Both the position numbers and the translations under genes were made by a program. A stretch of 64,000 nt of DNA from Oopsacas minuta (taxonomy: Eukaryota > Animalia > Porifera), in assembly GCA_024704765.1 (NCBI GenBank), contig JAKMXF010000210.1, positions 558,001 to 622,000 on the forward strand, given 5' to 3'. Every line of letters begins with the position of its first letter. Within the stretch, counting starts at the first letter, position 1. The notes below the pieces were generated by a model. It worked only from the letters and a program-made list of their open reading frames with translations, was not told where the DNA came from and made no database searches. Below, in pieces: positions 3,001-12,368 of the stretch.

Positions 3001-6000
3001 AGATATAGAATTATATTTGTGTTATTATGTAGGATTATATAGCTCTACACTTATACTGAGTGATGGAGAAGTTCAGCTGGTATATTCTGGGGGTCAAGCA
3101 TGTCATAGTAACAATGTTAACAGAACAACAATAATACGTTTCTATTGTGACAAGACAGCAACTTCTCCTCGAGCTGTAGTACTACCTGAATTGACACATT
3201 GTCTCTATGAAATTATGCTATATACTAATCTAGCTTGTCCTCCTAGCCAACCTACGTTCAAATGCAATGCTAACAATCCTGATAACGGAAACACTTACGA
3301 TCTGTCTAGCTTACAACACAAAGCTTATTTTGAAGTATACTCTACAGATAGTATTGTGTACTACTTTAGTGTTTGTAACCTTCTACCTTCTCAATATGGT
3401 AATAAGGGTGTACACTGTGTTACTGGTTCTAGCTTCTGTGTGTTACATAAGAACAGCAATAATGTGAGTATTTACTAAGTAGACTGTATCGTTAATAGAA
3501 TGATGGTTACTAGTTTGTATTGTAGATATGGAAAGCTACTAATCTCGGTACAATGACACACTCCCCTTACCTACTACGGGATAATCTTCTCCTACTCTCC
3601 TACTCAACTGAGGATGCGAAATATAACACTACCGTGGGATTAGAGTGTTCTGAAGAGTCACAATCGGTTACAGATCCAATTCTTGTTTATCATAGTGCTG
3701 ACTTTTCTACGAATATATTCTCATGGCTAACGCTAGCAGCTTGTCAGAGCGAGGCATCTGACAGCTGTCAAGTTGTGCAATACAGCACTGGATTTACTAT
3801 AGACTTAGACAGCTTCAAAGCAGTTAGTATTCAGTCTCAATCTAATGACGTAGGAGATAAGTTAGCTATTTCTCTTTGTGGTGCTCTAACAGATCCTAGC
3901 TTAGGAGATTGCTATAGTAATAACAATACTGCAGTGTGTTACTCAAAGGGTAGCGATCACTATCCTATTGCTACCTCTAATACTTCTAAATGGTTCTACG
4001 GAGATGAAATAGTAGTTTCTTATTATAATGGATTTAACTGTTTGGACCAATCTTCTCCATTCAAGAGCTCTGTAGAGCTTACGTTACAATGTGGTGATAG
4101 TGAAAGCCAATCATTCGTAGAGCCTTCTAATGAGTGTGTGTATCAGGTTCTATGGCAGAGTCCTCTGTTATGTCAGTATCAAGTTGAATGCAGTGTTACA
4201 CATAACGGATATGATTACGATCTGAATTGGCTGAAAGCATATGATAGCAATTGGAGAGTTAGTTTGTCTGATAAAAAATTTCTTATTAACGTGTGTCACA
4301 ATCTATTGCCAGAAGAAACACAAACTTGTGACAGTACAGCTGCTATTTGCATGATTAGTGGTAATCATGCAGTTAATTTAGGTCAGGTTACTAATGGGCC
4401 TCAGTATGTTAGTGAAGGAGCCCTTCAGATTGAGTATAAGAATGGAGATGAGTGTGGAGATGGGACATACAGTTCTACTATTCAGTTTAATTGCCAGAAA
4501 GGAGCTGATTTAGAAGATTATATCACTCAATCAGTGAATGTAAGTTTATGCTAACACTATTTATTAAATACGTTTATTATATCTTCTTCTTGTTATAGGG
4601 GTGTCACTATATGTTCATCTGGGATACACACGTGGCTTGTGAAGATGCTGGAGGTACTATTATTGGTAAATGTGAGATAGAAGACACAGTAACAGGAGAT
4701 GTATATGATCTTAAACCTATTTTTGATGTAGGGATAATTAATGTCACTATTGAACCATTATTACAGATTATTGCTTGTCAAACTATAAAAAGGTGTGGAG
4801 GAGCGGTATGTTATGACAATTCTATTAGCTATGGTAAATATACTGATTCTAGTCTCAAGTTAGTGAATCATGTCCCTACACTTGAGTACAAGGATGGTAG
4901 TCCTTGTGGTAACAGCAAGTACAAGTCTAACATAGAATTTATTTGTAACAAGAGTGCAATAGATCACAAGTATGTAGAGCATTTGCCAATAGACGGTTGT
5001 ATACACTATTTTTTATGGCATACTCCATTAGCTTGTGCTTCTACTGTCACTGAGTGTAAACTGACAGTTGACAACCGTATAGTTGATATTACAGATTTGA
5101 ATAGGAAATTTGGTGCTTGGGAGGTTGACGTGAAAGGTGATAAGTTATACTTTAATCCTTGCGCTGGTATGAGTTCTTTCTTGATTAACACAAATCTGAA
5201 GAGTGAATCTTGTTCCTCTGACTCTCTTGCTTGTCTTCTATCGAAAGAAACTTTGCAAGAAGTAGGAGCTCTGGACACAGCTGTTCTTAAACTCAGTATA
5301 GATGGAAAATATCCTATAGAAACAGCTCGTAGCCAAACTAAATGTATTCTTGATAAATCTAAAACAAAGTCAATTCAAATACTCTTCTATCCAGGCTCTG
5401 CTATGATAGAAACTCCTGTATTCCAGGGTCTCCATCGTACAACTAGCTCATGTGTGATTAGTATTGTATTCAGTACTTCTCTAGTCGGAGAATCTTCTCC
5501 TATCAATGAACATAATGAACTTATAACCACAGAGACACCAGGAACATGTCATAATGTACTTGTGAAGCTGAATAAAAATAAGGATTATCACATAAGTAGT
5601 GATTTGAATGGAGAAACTCTTGATTTCTACGTAAATTTCTGTTCACATACAAGTGTGGAAGGTTGCAAAGAAGGTACAGTGTGTCTCATAAGGACTCAAG
5701 GTAGTAAAAAATCCGATCCAATTGCTCTCAGTTCTTATAAAAAACAGAGAATAAATGCTGTTAATAATTCTTATATAGAATTAATCATTAGTTCTGTTAA
5801 CAAGTCATGTCCATTTACAAATAAACACATCCTTACAGTATTCTATATATCTTGTTCTTCCCACTATACCGCAGTGAGTATTGAATTCGAATTCACTTCT
5901 CCTACAGGCTGTCTCTATGTATTCAATGTGTTAGCGCCTTCATCAGTTTGTCTTTCATACGAACCTACTGATGCGCCTCCTGGAGAATCTATAAATAGCG

Positions 6001-6371
6001 CTGGTAAGACTGCTGTCGTGTTTATTGTAGTCCTGATTGTTTGTTTGTTAGGGATATTCCTTGCTATCCTAATCACACTCTGCTTCTATAAGCGCTCTAC
6101 CAAGGGCGATCGCATGTTCTACAAGCTTAGAGCTTATCTCTCTCGTGTACCAGACGTACAGTTTAGATTCCAGAAGGTTGACGGATCTGAAATGGGTCAT
6201 TTGATTACTAATATGAGTGGGAGTGAGTCTGAGGATGAAACTGTATCTGAGATTGGACCTGTGGGTACAAGAATTGAGCCTGCTGGGTTGGACAAGTTTT
6301 CTATTTCTGATCCTCCTGCTGGAAAAGAGGGAGGAGATGGTTCTGAAGATGAAGATTTTATTAAACTCTGA
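36..6371 (+). CDS. IGF2R: Cation-independent mannose-6-phosphate receptor (IGF2R-like), 5'-partial, 10 exons in window
   Basis: Repeated Cys-patterned MRH/CIMR domains (e.g. C.Y.F.W.T..AC, C.V......YDL..L), one TM helix and an acidic tail ending SEDEDFIKL. Exons joined in frame by hand: 36-359, 410-712, 774-1134, 1599-1831, 1894-2166, 2229-2580, 2791-2976, 3033-3463, 3526-4539, 4599-6371. Confidence 0.88.
1319..1392 (-). tRNA. tRNA-Ile(AAT), copy 1
   Basis: Reverse complement folds into a cloverleaf: GTCTACG TA GCTC AGTTGGTTA GAGC G TCGGT CTAATAA GCCGA ATGTC ATAGG TTCGATC CCTGT CGTGGGC A. A T8 Pol III terminator follows (1311-1318). Confidence 0.93.
1462..1535 (-). tRNA. tRNA-Ile(AAT), copy 2
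   Basis: Cloverleaf GCCCTCG TA GCTC AGTCGGTTA GAGC G TGGGT CTAATAA GCCCA AGGTC ACAGG TTCGAGC CCTGT CGGGGGC A, with a T5 terminator just downstream. Confidence 0.95.
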
Positions 6372-6544: not shown

Positions 6545-7780
6545 ATGCTAGCCGAAATATACCTTTATACTATACATCGAGAGGTTGTCATGTCCTTAAC
6601 TTTGAAGCAAATTTGTCAAATCTATTATATTGCTTTCCTCCTATCTTATTCTATGAGAGTTTCCTGTGAATTCATCCCCCCATCTAATCAGATATGTATG
6701 GACGAATCTATTACTTTTGATTGTTTACTTACTGGAACTTTTCCAACTGTACAATTATTTGTCCTCAATAATACAACAATCAATTTATTTCAATTAAATA
6801 ATATTGATAGTTTCTTCGGGATAGATCTAACCCGTCTAAGTGCTACAGTTGATAATACTCTAGATCAGAATACAGGTCTGTACACATTACTCCGTGCTAA
6901 CATTACACTTGTAAATATTACAAAGGGAGATAATGGTACACTGATAGGATGTACTGCAACTACTTCTGGTAATGTTTTACTGGAAGATTCAGATACTCTT
7001 TATCTAGCTTCTCCTCCTTCTGAACTTGACATTATATTATCCCCTATACCCTCTAATTGTAGTGTTAAAGTATCATGGACTTATCCTATACAGTCTACTC
7101 TACCTATAACTGAAGAGATTACAGATTCTGTTACTAACATTATTACTTATGATCGGGTATATTTCTCGAACTTCCTAACAGCTGGACAAGATTATACTTA
7201 CACTTTAACTACCAGCAACTGTTTAGGAGACTCTATAACAGCTGATACTCAGCTGTTCTCTCTTCCTTCTCAACCTGATGCTTACACCTGTTCTGCTAAA
7301 TATGGGTCTGAAAATAGAATACTAGTTTTACAGCTGTTTGGCTATACTTCTGAGTATGCTATTGAGACTAGTTTTACATTATCTGAAGACAGTGATAATA
7401 CCATTAATTTGTCTGATACTTTTACTGAACCACGTTACTATTCTAAACAGATGTTTAATCTACCATCAACAAGAAACTATACAGTTATGTTTACATCTAT
7501 ATTGAGAGATTGTATTAGATCCCTGCAAACAACTTGTGAAACCAAACTTAATATTACTGCTAGAGTTACACCAAATCCCTCCCCTCCTCCCTTAACGAAT
7601 ACATTCGTAACCACCAGTCCTTCCACATGTAATTATATTCTCAATACCAATGACTTTAGTATATTTAATGCAATGTTCTGGGTTAGTATCATTGGGTCGA
7701 TTTTGCTGTGTTTCCTCAATATTACCGTTTGTATTAGTTTTATTTTAATCTGTCTGAACCAATTTAGACTGGTGTTTTGA
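6545..7780 (+). CDS. Ig-like + FN3-like single-pass membrane protein, paralogue 1 (essentially no cytoplasmic tail)
   Basis: Hydrophobic leader (start may be Met at 6590), Ig-like domain (C...DNGTLIGC), FN3 signature (VSW...LTAGQDYTYTL..SNCLG), Pro/Thr stalk, TM, then a stop about 7 residues later. Confidence 0.8.
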   Translation: MLAEIYLYTIHREVVMSLTLKQICQIYYIAFLLSYSMRVSCEFIPPSNQICMDESITFDCLLTGTFPTVQLFVLNNTTINLFQLNNIDSFFGIDLTRLSATVDNTLDQNTGLYTLLRANITLVNITKGDNGTLIGCTATTSGNVLLEDSDTLYLASPPSELDIILSPIPSNCSVKVSWTYPIQSTLPITEEITDSVTNIITYDRVYFSNFLTAGQDYTYTLTTSNCLGDSITADTQLFSLPSQPDAYTCSAKYGSENRILVLQLFGYTSEYAIETSFTLSEDSDNTINLSDTFTEPRYYSKQMFNLPSTRNYTVMFTSILRDCIRSLQTTCETKLNITARVTPNPSPPPLTNTFVTTSPSTCNYILNTNDFSIFNAMFWVSIIGSILLCFLNITVCISFILICLNQFRLVF

Positions 7781-7887
7781 TACGTTTGTATATTTTGAGC
7801 ATTTTAAAGCTATCTTTGTATTATAATTTCAGCTAATCAATTGAATTGAATATATTTAATGAGTGACTTATATATTTAGCTTTTCCA

Positions 7888-9237
7888 ATGAATAACCTAC
7901 TCTTACTTCTACTCTTATTATCCCTCTTGCTATGTTATATGAGAGTTTCCTGTGAATTCATCCCTCCATCTAATCAGATATGTATGGACGAATCTATTAC
8001 TTTTGATTGTTTACTTCCTGGAACTTTTCCAACTATACAATTATTTGTCATCAATAATACAACAGTCAATTTATTTCAAATAAATAATATTGATAGTTTC
8101 TTCGGGATAGATCTAACCCGTCTAAGTGCTACAGTTGATAATGCTCTAGATCAGAATACAGGTCTGTACACAGTACTCCGTGCTAACATTACACTTGTAA
8201 ATATTACAAAGGGAGATAATGGTACACTGATAGGATGTACTGCAACTACTTCTGGTAATGTTTTACTGGAAGATTCAGATACTCTTTATCTAGCTTCTCC
8301 TCCTTCTGAACCTGACATTATATTATCCCCTATACCCTCTAATTGTAGTGTTAAAGTATCATGGACTTATCCTATACAGTCTACTCTACCTATAACTGAA
8401 GAGATTACAGATTCTGTTACTAACATTATTACTTATGATCGGGTATATTTCTCGAACTTCCTAACAGCTGGACAAGATTATACTTACACTTTAACTTCCA
8501 GCAACTGTTTAGGAGACTCTATAACAGCTGATACTCAGCTGTTCTCTCTTCCTTCTCAACCTGATGCTTACACCTGTTCTGCTGAATATGGGTCTGAAAA
8601 TAGAATGCTAGTTTTACAGCTGTTGGGCTATACTTCTGAGTATGCTATTGAGACTAGTTTTACTTTATCTGAAGACAGTGATAATACCACTAATTTGTCT
8701 GATACTTTTACTGAACCACGTTACTATTCTAAACAGATGTTTGATCTACCATCAACAAGAAACTATACAGTTGTGTTTACATCTGTATTGAGAGATTGTA
8801 TTGGATCCCTGCAAACAACTTGTGAAGCCAAACTTATTATTACTGGTATAGTTACACCAACTTCCCCCCCTATTCCAACACCTACTCCCTCCATGACTAT
8901 TCCAACTCAGAGTCCACAGGATTACCTAGTATACATCATAATAGCAGTAGTTCTCTTCCTACTGTTATTATTCCTATCTTTTGTTATAATCTTGCTTACT
9001 TGTCTACTAAACAGAGGGAAAATATTCAGAAATAGAACTTCTCCTCAGAATGCTAAGGGTTTTTCTAAGCGGGTTGCAGCTCCCGCGAAAATCTCTGATT
9101 CAAATGAAAACGGGGATGAGCTAAATTACCTAAAACCAGAATTTGGTTCCAATCCTAAGAAACCTAATGCTCCTATCCCTAAGACTCTGTATGCAGATAT
9201 TAAGCATATGCCTTCTGACTACGCTACCCTACAGTAG
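7888..9237 (+). CDS. Ig-like + FN3-like receptor, paralogue 2, with ITSM/ITIM-like cytoplasmic tail
   Basis: Signal peptide MNNLLLLLLLLSLLLCY, the same ectodomain, TM YIIIAVVLFLLLLFLSFVIILLTCLL, and a tail of about 75 aa with LNYLKP, TLYADI and SDYATL. Confidence 0.88.
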   Translation: MNNLLLLLLLLSLLLCYMRVSCEFIPPSNQICMDESITFDCLLPGTFPTIQLFVINNTTVNLFQINNIDSFFGIDLTRLSATVDNALDQNTGLYTVLRANITLVNITKGDNGTLIGCTATTSGNVLLEDSDTLYLASPPSEPDIILSPIPSNCSVKVSWTYPIQSTLPITEEITDSVTNIITYDRVYFSNFLTAGQDYTYTLTSSNCLGDSITADTQLFSLPSQPDAYTCSAEYGSENRMLVLQLLGYTSEYAIETSFTLSEDSDNTTNLSDTFTEPRYYSKQMFDLPSTRNYTVVFTSVLRDCIGSLQTTCEAKLIITGIVTPTSPPIPTPTPSMTIPTQSPQDYLVYIIIAVVLFLLLLFLSFVIILLTCLLNRGKIFRNRTSPQNAKGFSKRVAAPAKISDSNENGDELNYLKPEFGSNPKKPNAPIPKTLYADIKHMPSDYATLQ

Positions 9238-9546
9238 TTATGCCTTTGTACTTGTTAGTGGTTTTATTCTTATCTAAGGTATTAATTCAGCTTAAATCTA
9301 ATCCTGCTGGTATGACCTATTAGTAATTATCCTCCCCCTTCTCTACTAAATGGATTTATATTGAATTGTTTATTTCTTTACTTTCTTTGTATAATATCTA
9401 GTGAACTGTTTACCTTATATAACTTGTATGTATAGGATATGTAGTATTTGTTTGTTGTTTTGTTTACTTTATAATAATCATACTATCCAGAATTATTTGC
9501 ACAACCAAACAATTCATATCTTCGTTCATTTTCTTACTAGTTAGCT

Positions 9547-9650
9547 ATGGCTAGCACTACATGTCCACATGTAACTAACCAAGGTCTAGAGATGGATCTT
9601 GGTAACTTATCGGCTACTGACATAGATTTCCATCTAACTAATGAGGGAGG
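9547..9650 (+). pseudogene. RRS1: Duplicated 5' fragment of RRS1 (about 35 codons) at the duplication junction
   Basis: Matches 11234-11337, then switches abruptly to the sequence of 7706 onward. Confidence 0.9.
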
Positions 9651-9831
9651 CTGTGTTTCCTCAATATTACCGTTTGTATTAGTTTTATTTTAATCTGTCT
9701 GAACCAATTTAGACTCGTGTTTTGATACGTTTGTATATTTTGAGCATTTTAAAGCTATCTTTGTATTATAATTTTAGCTAATCAATTGAATTGAATATAT
9801 TTATGACTGATTTATTTATTTAGCTATTCAA

Positions 9832-10800
9832 ATGAATAACTTACTCTTACTTCTACTCTTATTATCCCTCTTGCTATGTTATATGAGAGTTTCCTGTGAA
9901 TTCATCCCTCCATCTAATCAGATATGTATGGACGAATCTATTACTTTTGATTGTTTACTTCCTGGAACTTTTCTGCTTGTACAAGTATTTATCGTCAATT
10001 CTACACTAGTCAATTTATTTCAAATAAATAATATTGATAGTTTCTTCGGGATAGATCTAACCCGTCTAAGTGCTACAGTTGATAATACTCTAGATCAGAA
10101 TACAGGTCTGTACACAGTACTCCGTGCTAACATTACACTTATTGATATTACCAAGGAAGATAATGGTACACTGATAGGATGTCAAGCGACTAATTCTGAT
10201 AATGATTTAATTGAAGTTTCAGATACTCTTTATCTAGCTTCTCCTCCTGAACTTGACATTATATTATCCCCTATACCCTCTAATTGTAGTGTTAAAGTAT
10301 CATGGACTTATCCTATACAGTCCACTCTACCTATAACTGAAGAGATTACAGATTCTGTTACTAACATTATTACTTATGATCGGGTATATTTCTCGAACTT
10401 CCTAACAGCTGGACAAGATTATACTTACACTTTAACTTCCAGCAACTGTTTAGGAGACTCTATAACAGCTGATACTCAGCTGTTCTCTCTTCCTTCTCAA
10501 CCTGATGCTTACACCTGTTCTGCTGAATATGGGTCTGAAAATAGAATGCTAGTTTTACAGCTGTTGGGCTATACTTCTGAGTATGCTATTGAGACTAGTT
10601 TTACTTTATCTGAAGACAGTGATAATACCACTAATTTGTCTGATACTTTTACTGAACCACGTTACTATTCTAAACAGATGTTTGATCTACCATCAACAAG
10701 AAACTATACAGTTGTGTTTACATCTATATTGAGAAATTGTATTGGATCCCTGCAAACAACTTGTGAAACCAAACTTAATATTACTGCTTTAGTTCTATGA
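9832..10800 (+). CDS. Ig-like + FN3-like protein, paralogue 3, stops before the TM (secreted form or pseudogene)
   Basis: Signal peptide and full ectodomain. TGA at 10798-10800 precedes the stalk, and the downstream TM/tail region is mostly deleted. Confidence 0.7.
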   Translation: MNNLLLLLLLLSLLLCYMRVSCEFIPPSNQICMDESITFDCLLPGTFLLVQVFIVNSTLVNLFQINNIDSFFGIDLTRLSATVDNTLDQNTGLYTVLRANITLIDITKEDNGTLIGCQATNSDNDLIEVSDTLYLASPPELDIILSPIPSNCSVKVSWTYPIQSTLPITEEITDSVTNIITYDRVYFSNFLTAGQDYTYTLTSSNCLGDSITADTQLFSLPSQPDAYTCSAEYGSENRMLVLQLLGYTSEYAIETSFTLSEDSDNTTNLSDTFTEPRYYSKQMFDLPSTRNYTVVFTSILRNCIGSLQTTCETKLNITALVL

Positions 10801-11233
10801 ACTCCCTCCCTTACCTCCATGACTACAAACACAGGTTTACCACCTCAGAGTCTACCGTATTACCTAACATACATCATAATAGCAGTAGTACTCTATGCCT
10901 TCTGACTACGCTACCCTACAGTAGTTATGCCTTTGTACTTGTTAGTGGTTTTATTCTTATCTAAGGTATTAATTCAGCTTAAATCTAATCCTGCTGGTAT
11001 AACCTATTAGTAATTATCCTCCCCCTTCTCTACTAAATGGATTTATATTGAATTGTTTATTTCTTTACTTTCTTTGTATAATATCTAGTGAACTGTTTAC
11101 CTTATATAACTTGTATGTATAGGATATGTAGTATTTGTTTGTTGTTTTGTTTACTTTATAATAATCATACTATCCAGGATTATTTGCACAACCAAACAAT
11201 TCATATCTTCGTTCATTTTCTTACTAGTTAGCT

Positions 11234-12368
11234 ATGGCTAGCACTACATGTCCACATGTAACTAACCAAGGTCTAGAGATGGATCTTGGTAACTTATCGG
11301 CTACTGACATAGATTTCCATCTAACTAATGAGGGAGGTGTTCCTAATGAGCAGGAGTTATTGAACAGATCACAACAATGTGTTCAAACAATGTTCAGTCA
11401 GCTGTCTAAACTTCCTCACGAGAGAGACGGACATCTGTCAGTTGTCAAACTACCTGAACCTAAAACCCAGCTTCCAAGATATCAACCTCTTCCTCAACCT
11501 AAGCCTCTGACTAGATGGGAGAGATATTCCAAAGAGAAGGGAGTGAGTAATAAGAAGAGGAGTAGGATGGTGTGGGATGAAGGAGGACAGGAATGGAAAC
11601 CAAGATGGGGATACAAGAAGGCTAGTAAGAGACCAGAGGATCAGTGGTTGGTTGAGGTAAGTACTAAGTTATTACTTATATATTAGATTAATTCTATCAA
11701 TTATTATGCTATTAGATTCCAGACCAGAAGGATCCATATGAAGATTACTTTGAGAAGGCTAAAGAAGAGAAGAGAGAGAGGGTAGCTAAAAATGAGTACC
11801 AGAGAGTGAGGAACCTTATGAGAGACCATGAGGGTAAAATTAAAGCTCCACACCTCCTCACAAATCAGGGACAGAAAGGAGGAAGGAAGGAACTTAATAT
11901 GATGACTAGCCTTGCAAAGGTTTCTACTCCATCTCTTGGAAAGTAAGTATTAGCTATATACACGTAGTTGTGATAATATTTATCTTCTGATATATTTATA
12001 GGTTTAGTGAGAAAGTTAAAGGAGAACCTAAATCCATCCGTGGGCAGAAGAGAAGGTTTGATCCTGTGTTAGGAGATTTAAAATCAGAACGAGACAAACA
12101 GTTGAAACTCTTAGAAACAATATCAAGAGATAAACCCATAGTGAATGTTAGTAAAGCAGTCAACAGGTATATTGATAAGAAACAGAAGTCTAATAGACAG
12201 ACAGAGGATAATTATGATAATGAAGATACACAACCAAGACATAAAAGTAAGTTTGGTAAAAAGATGAAAGGGAAAACTCCCTTGAAAACGAAACTACCTA
12301 AAGCAGGTAAGAAAGTTGAGAAAAAACTGAAAAGATTGCAACAGACGAAAAGAAGAATGAAACTTTAG
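11234..12368 (+). CDS. RRS1: Ribosome biogenesis regulatory protein RRS1, 3 exons
   Basis: Motifs LPRYQPLPQPKPLTRWERY, WKPRWGYK, KNEYQRVRN, STPSLGKF. Exons 11234-11656, 11716-11942, 12002-12368; both 59-bp GT-AG introns keep frame. Confidence 0.95.

Follow-up and report, generated by a model that had tools for sequence, protein, structure and literature searches.

Three tandem genes on the forward strand of a 64,000-nt stretch of DNA from the glass sponge (hexactinellid) Oopsacas minuta encode proteins with a common ectodomain and different C-termini. We call this whole stretch the window, and all positions refer to it unless a contig is named. Copy 1 is tail-less and ends shortly after a hydrophobic anchor, copy 2 continues through a transmembrane (TM) helix into a tail with conserved tyrosine motifs, and copy 3 is a recent, truncated duplicate of copy 2. 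We lean towards reading the products of copies 1 and 2 as two type I surface glycoproteins built like a paired receptor. Paired receptors, which have a binding domain in common but differ in their signalling ends, count as a hallmark of innate immunity in vertebrates; among invertebrates, to our knowledge, they have been proposed for just a few allorecognition systems.

The tailed and tail-less pair and its ectodomain

A preliminary description of this DNA had reported three paralogues with one ectodomain and differing C-termini, and we found the open reading frames (ORFs) where it had placed them (Table 1). Its positions for TLYADI and SDYATL are also correct, its LNYLKP lies within ELNYLKPEF at 9118-9144, and it is right about copy 1, which has its own stalk and its own hydrophobic anchor, with Asn and Cys inside it, followed by just 7 residues. 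The ectodomains of copies 1-3 are 80-92% identical. Alignment with other species indicates that the likely true start of copy 1 is its second Met, at 6590.

The pairing of tailed and tail-less forms is kept at the syntenic locus in at least seven other glass-sponge genomes, including that of Vazella pourtalesii. Every family member for which a contig was fetched sits at this locus (L001-L006, L009, L010), where the gene order is CIMR-repeat genes, tail-less gene(s), tailed gene, RRS1, NOX and ELP1. In the most distant locus, L010, the ectodomain is just 33-36% identical, yet both types are present; therefore, the ancestral and conserved unit is the pair, one tail-less gene plus one tailed gene. 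The triad that had been described as a unit does not survive this comparison, copy 3 being a very recent, partly deleted duplicate confined to O. minuta. In its place, species B and C each carry an additional tail-less gene, which in species C is frameshifted.

An exhaustive phmmer search of 1.84 billion representatives, and a profile search in addition, found no relatives outside the set of syntenic loci, bar one generic multi-FN3 protein. Literature searches likewise found no paper describing the family. As judged from these searches, the receptor pair locus is specific to glass sponges and represents a new family.

Could splicing give copy 1 a tail, as the preliminary description had allowed? 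Only 107 bp separate its stop codon from the ATG of copy 2, and all 10 tail-less genes of other species (the counterparts of copy 1 are P0008, P0011-17 and the genes at L005 and L006) likewise stop 0-14 residues past the anchor. The sole spliced alternative is an NCBI model that runs into copy 2, and we rejected a spliced tail. That model, KAI6655209.1 (LOD99_2497, window 7205-9237), is a chimera of the 3' half of copy 1 and all of copy 2, the latter 100% identical to part of it, joined through a predicted intron with its donor at ~7628 and its acceptor at ~7879; copy 1 has no public gene model of its own. An acceptor-like TTTAG lies 8-9 nt 5' of the start codons of both copy 2 (7875-7879) and copy 3 (9819-9823).

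Vazella Trinity transcripts in EukProt include the tailed gene and run colinear with its ORF in the genome, from which it follows that the tailed gene is expressed and that its coding sequence (CDS) is intronless. A look within the 90% cluster of the tail-less gene in the EukProt data for Vazella found no transcript of it. In L008, a scaffold from a Vazella metagenome, a run of N (4135-4235) lies between the 5' end of the tail-less gene and the tailed gene; we considered the resulting single fused gene as a copy-number polymorphism and rejected it as an assembly artefact of this gap.

To examine the fold, we built an AlphaFold2 model of copy 2 on an alignment of 20 sequences. The model contains three beta-sandwich domains, spanning about residues 30-133 (D1), 140-216 (D2) and 228-318 (D3), with a predicted local distance difference test (pLDDT) score mostly of 85-93. 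The stalk that follows is rich in Thr and Pro and leads through a TM helix into a 74-residue disordered tail. Foldseek matches the ectodomain to Ig-FN3-FN3 segments of contactins, NCAM2 and the IL-6R/IL-11R/CNTFR/CRLF1/gp130 family (E 1e-11 to 1e-12); given the low TM-scores of these matches (0.2-0.3), the common feature is the domain order. The Ig plus FN3 outer part proposed in the preliminary description is thus supported by AlphaFold2 and by the fold searches, with two FN3 domains.

Modelled alone, D1 reaches a pLDDT of 86.6, and its top Foldseek and VIA matches are all Ig domains. Its best structural matches are an antibody VL domain and the third Ig domain of IL-1R (Z 8.4), with 95 residues aligned to VL at 2.7 Å. 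C41, which is nearly invariant, lies on predicted strand B and the invariant C117 on strand F, the Cys pattern of Ig domains. The Pfam Ig model gave no significant match to D1 (ig E = 0.11, below the cut-off and in one copy only), no family member had a Pfam hit that passed the cut-off, and the family profile finds the Ig domain of JAM-A weakly (E 0.014). D2 is an FN3 domain by sequence: residues 135-228 match a protein with 20 FN3 repeats (phmmer E 1.3e-13), and the homologue P0017 has an fn3 hit at E 0.0025. D3 is FN3-like by its fold alone. The best structural neighbours among AFDB clusters, A0A1X7TTJ2, A0A1X7UEI6 and A0A1X7UNT1, are uncharacterised Ig/FN3 membrane proteins with ~16% identity to copy 2, which we take from their accession series to be from the demosponge Amphimedon.

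Table 1. Coordinates of the receptor genes and associated features (window positions unless residues are given).
Feature	Position	Strand	Description
Copy 1, tail-less type	6545..7780	+	411-aa ORF; signal peptide, Ig-like D1, FN3 D2, FN3-like D3, stalk, hydrophobic anchor
Homogenised gene-conversion tract, copy 1	6649..7585	+	97.1% DNA identity to copy 2 7935-8871; mature ectodomain only
Type-specific anchor of copy 1 (FNAMFWVSIIGSILLCFLNITVCISFILICL)	7664..7756	+	F..FW invariant; mid-anchor Asn in 8/11 homologues
Source unit of duplication	7705..9650	+	3' end of copy 1, copy 2, its 3' untranslated region (UTR), RRS1 upstream region and first 104 nt of RRS1 CDS
Copy 2, tailed type	7888..9237	+	449-aa ORF; signal peptide, D1-D3, Thr/Pro-rich stalk, TM helix, tail
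Copy 2 D1	about residues 21-139	+	AlphaFold2
Copy 2 D2	about residues 140-222	+	AlphaFold2
Copy 2 D3	about residues 223-320	+	AlphaFold2
Copy 2 TM helix	residues 344-375, nt 8917-9012	+	AlphaFold2
Tail motif 1, ELNYLKPEF	9118..9144	+	E-L-x-Y-x-x-P-x-F invariant in 10/10 tailed genes
Tail motif 2, TLYADI	9184..9201	+	T-x-Y invariant; +3 is I, L or M in 10/10
SDYATL	9214..9231	+	O. minuta only; fits inhibitory motif (ITIM); with YADI fits activation motif (ITAM; YxxI-x6-YxxL)
RRS1 fragment	9547..9650	+	First 104 nt of CDS; between copies 2 and 3, carried by the 1.95-kb duplication
Second unit, with copy 3	9650..11337	+	1.95-kb tandem duplicate of 7705-9650
Copy 3	9832..10800	+	322-aa ORF; copy-2-type gene ending after D3 at in-frame TGA
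Copy 3 remnants	10801..10924	+	Stalk and half TM (10801-10893), 250-bp deletion junction, last 31 nt of copy 2 CDS out of frame

Gene conversion, diversity and the two C-terminal ends

Trees and DNA identities together show that recurrent gene conversion over ~0.95 kb keeps the two ectodomains alike within each species. In a maximum-likelihood tree of the ectodomains, tailed and tail-less genes cluster by species or sample rather than by type (bootstrap 100%, SH-aLRT 99-100), and the type label needs 8 changes on this tree, the highest number possible. A tree forcing all tailed genes together is rejected, with a log-likelihood difference of 1402 and p = 8.5e-44 in the approximately unbiased (AU) test. 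In 8 of the 9 pairings, across the 8 species compared, tail-less and tailed genes share ~0.95 kb of DNA homology (CDS nt ~50-1000) at 90-97% identity, reaching from near the end of the signal peptide to the end of D3; for the second tail-less copy of species B and for species X, the tract is 1.1-1.2 kb long and also covers the gene start. Synonymous divergence (dS) of the same ectodomain region is ~0.9 between species. The signal peptide, stalk, anchor and tail remain type-specific; the C-terminal modules are unalignable between types, yet each is kept across species.

Identity within Vazella is mosaic: one pair is 100% identical in D1 and just 77% in D3, and another allele has a D3 100% identical to that of the tail-less gene. 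Conversion is therefore ongoing within populations, with its boundaries mostly at the borders of the mature ectodomain.

Diversity is also raised in D1. Assembly ERZ25072730 contains two contigs (L002 and L009, compared here as haplotypes), each with the whole locus and at similar read depth. Their flanks are ~98.3% identical and the D1 of each of the three genes 91-93%; per site, they differ by 8.5% in D1 compared with 1.5% in the flanking genes (p = 7e-29). Synonymous and non-synonymous sites both show this excess, at 0.109 in D1 versus 0.030 in the flanks and 0.078 versus 0.011, respectively. In Vazella, metagenomes and transcripts contain several D1 variants, and both genes of one haplotype have the same one. 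The tailed gene of Vazella falls into two or more allele classes, set apart by a tract converted from its tail-less neighbour. For the receptor family as a whole, the ratio of non-synonymous to synonymous change (omega) is ~0.37, compared with 0.04-0.15 for neighbouring genes.

Two stronger claims about D1 were tried and rejected. Residues 48-61, 83-96 and 118-131 of D1 are somewhat richer in variable sites, which might suggest hypervariable loops like the complementarity-determining regions of antibodies. The number of variable comparisons per site is as high in D3 (0.96) as in D1 (0.95), with 0.53 in D2, and an edge-of-tract effect is an adequate null. As for positive selection, within-species omega of D1 ranges from 0.6 to 2.6, with no value significantly above 1.

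The tail of the tailed type, ~75 residues long, contains only two invariant blocks among the 10 tailed genes compared, and both contain Tyr. The TxYxx[I/L/M] block fits the consensus of the immunoreceptor tyrosine-based switch motif (ITSM). The ELxYxxP block has Pro at +3 and so falls outside the pattern [ILVS]xYxx[ILV] of the corresponding inhibitory motif, ITIM; pYxxP is an SH2 site of the Crk/Abl/PLC-gamma type. These motifs never vary among the Vazella metagenome and transcript alleles. The preliminary description had singled out all three tyrosine motifs of copy 2: conservation in orthologues bears out the ITSM-like TxYxxI and the LNYLKP block, and not SDYATL, which is absent from all other species and hence is no family ITIM. 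Nor is the label "inhibitory" established, the same residues in O. minuta forming an ITAM-like YADI-x6-YATL. The L010 tail carries YTDI-x11-YAYI, with ITAM-like spacing; the second ITAM Tyr is absent in six other species, and a conserved YxxL/I-x6-12-YxxL/I was not found. By these comparisons, tyrosine-based signalling by the tailed form is well supported, while its sign is not.

The end of the tail-less type is conserved in a different manner. Its hydrophobic stretch is 27-34 residues long and has conserved motifs, with F..FW at the outer edge of the anchor. It contains no Lys, Arg, Asp or Glu, so that the charged TM residue of an activating member was not found and an activating partner finds no support here. 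Judging from its sequence features, the anchor may span the membrane and recruit a partner by polar contacts, or it may be a signal for glycosylphosphatidylinositol (GPI) attachment.

Copy 3 and the neighbouring genes

Copy 3 arose in a 1.95-kb tandem duplication (Table 1) that is absent from other species. The non-coding parts of the two units are 99-99.6% identical; the duplication is therefore very recent. D2 and D3 are 98-99% identical between the units and D1 about 93%, and for 7888-8956 versus 9832-10894 the DNA identity is 93.6%. As had been described, copy 3 stops before the TM segment, but the stop is an in-frame TGA (10798-10800) with a decayed stalk and half a TM segment downstream, still in frame; a 250-bp deletion, equivalent to 8957-9206 of copy 2, removes the rest of the TM segment and the tail.

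The D1 of copy 3 is out of step with the rest of the duplicate. Between copies 2 and 3, D1 shows 28 differences in 339 nt, compared with 7 in 552 nt for D2 and D3 together (p = 3e-7). The excess in D1 is synonymous too (p = 0.03), and the D1 omega of 1.4 does not differ from 1 (p = 0.33). No other paralogue that could have donated this D1 was found in the window or among the annotated O. minuta proteins of the databases searched. The simplest account would be unequal crossing-over between haplotypes with different D1 alleles.

From its structure and distribution, we infer that copy 3 yields a secreted ectodomain at most and may be a pseudogene; as far as the compared loci tell, it is not a conserved third arm of the system. 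That it works as a secreted decoy rather than decaying as a pseudogene is a fair question, and we regard the functional answer as possible though somewhat the less probable of the two. Its ORF is intact for the signal peptide and D1-D3 and stops exactly at the end of D3, the gene shares 99% identity with copy 2 in the upstream region (9650-9831) and the 3' UTR, nonsense-mediated decay is not expected because the CDS is intronless, and a model protein for it, P0002, is present in the protein database that was searched. Set against this, the stalk remains, the half TM segment and the 250-bp deletion look like decay and not design, the D1 omega is indistinguishable from neutral, the copy is confined to O. 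minuta, and third copies elsewhere are of the tail-less type, one of them frameshifted. The frameshifted gene is the middle gene of species C (L003 6586-7777), a tail-less type with a signal peptide of the tailed type, split into ORFs at 6586-7275 and 7181-7777; either the gene is a pseudogene or the break stems from a long-read indel error.

Beyond copy 3, an intact RRS1 begins at 11234 and is apparently split by an intron at about 11687-12065. On the other side of the receptor genes, at 4611-6371, lies a run of ORFs with repeats of the cation-independent mannose-6-phosphate receptor (CIMR), which is found upstream of the receptor pair in every species. The ORFs of this run are probably exons of a single large CI-MPR-like gene, with a TM segment and an acidic tail encoded by the last one.

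A proposed paired receptor and its alternatives

If copies 1 and 2 encode a paired receptor, D1 would probably be the ligand-binding part. D1 is the most polymorphic part, and the ligand would therefore probably be variable too, such as self markers, or microbes and symbionts. The two invariant tyrosines of the tail would be phosphorylated and dock SH2 proteins, with an activating or an inhibitory outcome. Copy 1, unable to signal alone, would act as a decoy or competitor for the same ligand, or would signal through a partner recruited by its anchor.

This arrangement resembles that of the vertebrate paired families KIR, LILR, SIRP, PILR and CD200R, and of CEACAM1 versus the GPI-linked CEACAMs. 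As in those families, the genes are adjacent, their near-identical ectodomains of the immunoglobulin superfamily are kept so by conversion, a tail with tyrosine motifs is found on one member only, and the genes evolve fast, are polymorphic and are gained and lost. Unlike the vertebrate receptors, the sponge pair has the domain set Ig plus two FN3 and an unrelated sequence, it has no conserved canonical ITIM, and its tail-less anchor has no Lys or Arg; an ITAM adaptor is not known, adaptors not having been searched for.

Several observations weigh against a paired receptor. Among the tailed genes there is no conserved canonical ITIM, and TxYxxI doubles as a YxxPhi sorting signal. The tail-less anchor is uncharged, and its Asn is missing in 3 of 11 homologues. 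Omega did not exceed 1 significantly in any comparison (p = 0.33 for copy 2 versus copy 3), and the extra divergence of D1 and D3 may, at least in part, reflect tract edges being converted less often. That L002 and L009 are haplotypes of one sample is assumed rather than proven, and just 2-4 haplotypes were sampled per species.

The product could instead be a homophilic cell-adhesion molecule with two anchor isoform genes, comparable to the TM and GPI forms of NCAM, to nectins or to JAMs, that would hold the syncytial tissue together. The tyrosines would then serve YxxPhi sorting or bind cytoskeletal adaptors, and the polymorphism would be a by-product of conversion and weak constraint. Contactins, NCAM2 and IgLON stand among the best structural matches, beside the cytokine-receptor alpha chains, and the weak profile match to JAM-A points the same way. 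So do the YADI and YSDI motifs, which fit YxxPhi, and the tail-less forms, whose ends 0-14 residues past a C-terminal hydrophobic stretch are like those of a GPI signal. However, F..FW and the mid-anchor Asn are kept across species, which is unexpected of a GPI signal that is cleaved off, and the invariant ELxYxxPxF is no sorting motif. Structural adhesion molecules are also usually conserved, whereas here omega is ~0.37 and the diversity of D1 is 5-6 times that of the flanks. We consider an adhesion molecule unlikely, if worth keeping in mind.

A more specific proposal is that the locus could be a determinant of glass-sponge allorecognition, governing fusion and rejection much as Alr1 and Alr2 do in Hydractinia; this strikes us as improbable in the form stated. 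D1 would bind only a matching D1 in trans, gene conversion would match the D1 of the tailed and tail-less genes on each haplotype, and the balance of tailed and tail-less forms would set fusion or rejection. The raised diversity of D1, and D1 variants that are common to both genes of a haplotype, agree with such a role. Hexactinellids do discriminate self from non-self, and the aggregation-factor genes of demosponges are absent from them (PMC5400394).

The Alr proteins consist of a V-set domain, one or more I-set domains and one Fn3-like fold, followed by a TM segment and ITAM/ITIM-like tails; they have six invariant Cys and an interdomain disulfide, they belong to a complex of 41 genes, and their function as homophilic allodeterminants has been shown (PMC9546547). 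The sponge proteins are similarly type I, with a divergent V-like Ig domain at the N-terminus, an Fn3-like membrane-proximal domain, a TM segment and a tyrosine-motif tail, an architecture like that reported for Alr, and they too are encoded by tandem, polymorphic paralogues. Their nearest neighbour among the language-model features of the ESM Atlas is a cluster named "Allorecognition 2" (0.93, 179/256 features), which by the calibration of the tool is a lead only. Unlike Alr, the sponge architecture is Ig plus two FN3, and phmmer and profile searches found no sequence homology to Alr; the kinship with Hydractinia Alr suggested in the preliminary description is thus reduced to this one language-model link. 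The allelic differences are modest for an allodeterminant, 7-16% of D1 residues in few haplotypes, and two Vazella individuals have an identical tailed protein (L006 = L007).

In Botryllus, fester and uncle fester of the fuhc locus are polymorphic receptors that reportedly may integrate activating and inhibitory signals when self is told from non-self (PMC12582321, PMC11507803). They differ from the sponge pair in family and architecture, in a far larger diversity and in a function that is supported genetically.

Lastly, a cytokine-receptor-like alpha chain for a secreted ligand is very hard to credit: although CRLF1, IL-11RA, IL-6RA, CNTFR and gp130 D1-D3, with the same order of an Ig and two FN3 domains, are among the top AFDB/Swiss-Prot and PDB matches, and CNTFR and soluble IL-6R would be counterparts of the tail-less (or GPI-like) and soluble forms here (such alpha chains exist in membrane, GPI-linked and soluble forms), the TM-scores of 0.2-0.3 reflect domain order only, no sequence homology was found, and the alignment and tails lack every mark of a class I receptor, with no WSxWS in D3, two conserved Cys in D2 rather than the four of the cytokine-binding module, and no box-1 motif in the tail.

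With a paired receptor as the preferred reading, this glass-sponge locus presents the genetic features of such a system. The pair is old, its genes undergo repeated conversion that stays within the ectodomain, the tyrosine motifs do not vary, the Ig-like domain farthest from the membrane is polymorphic, and copies have been gained and lost. The locus is also a clean natural case of conversion boundaries held at domain borders. As a candidate for self/non-self discrimination in hexactinellids, it is concrete, small and intronless. If a role in allorecognition were true, then one of the animal lineages that branched off earliest would have invented paired-receptor logic independently.

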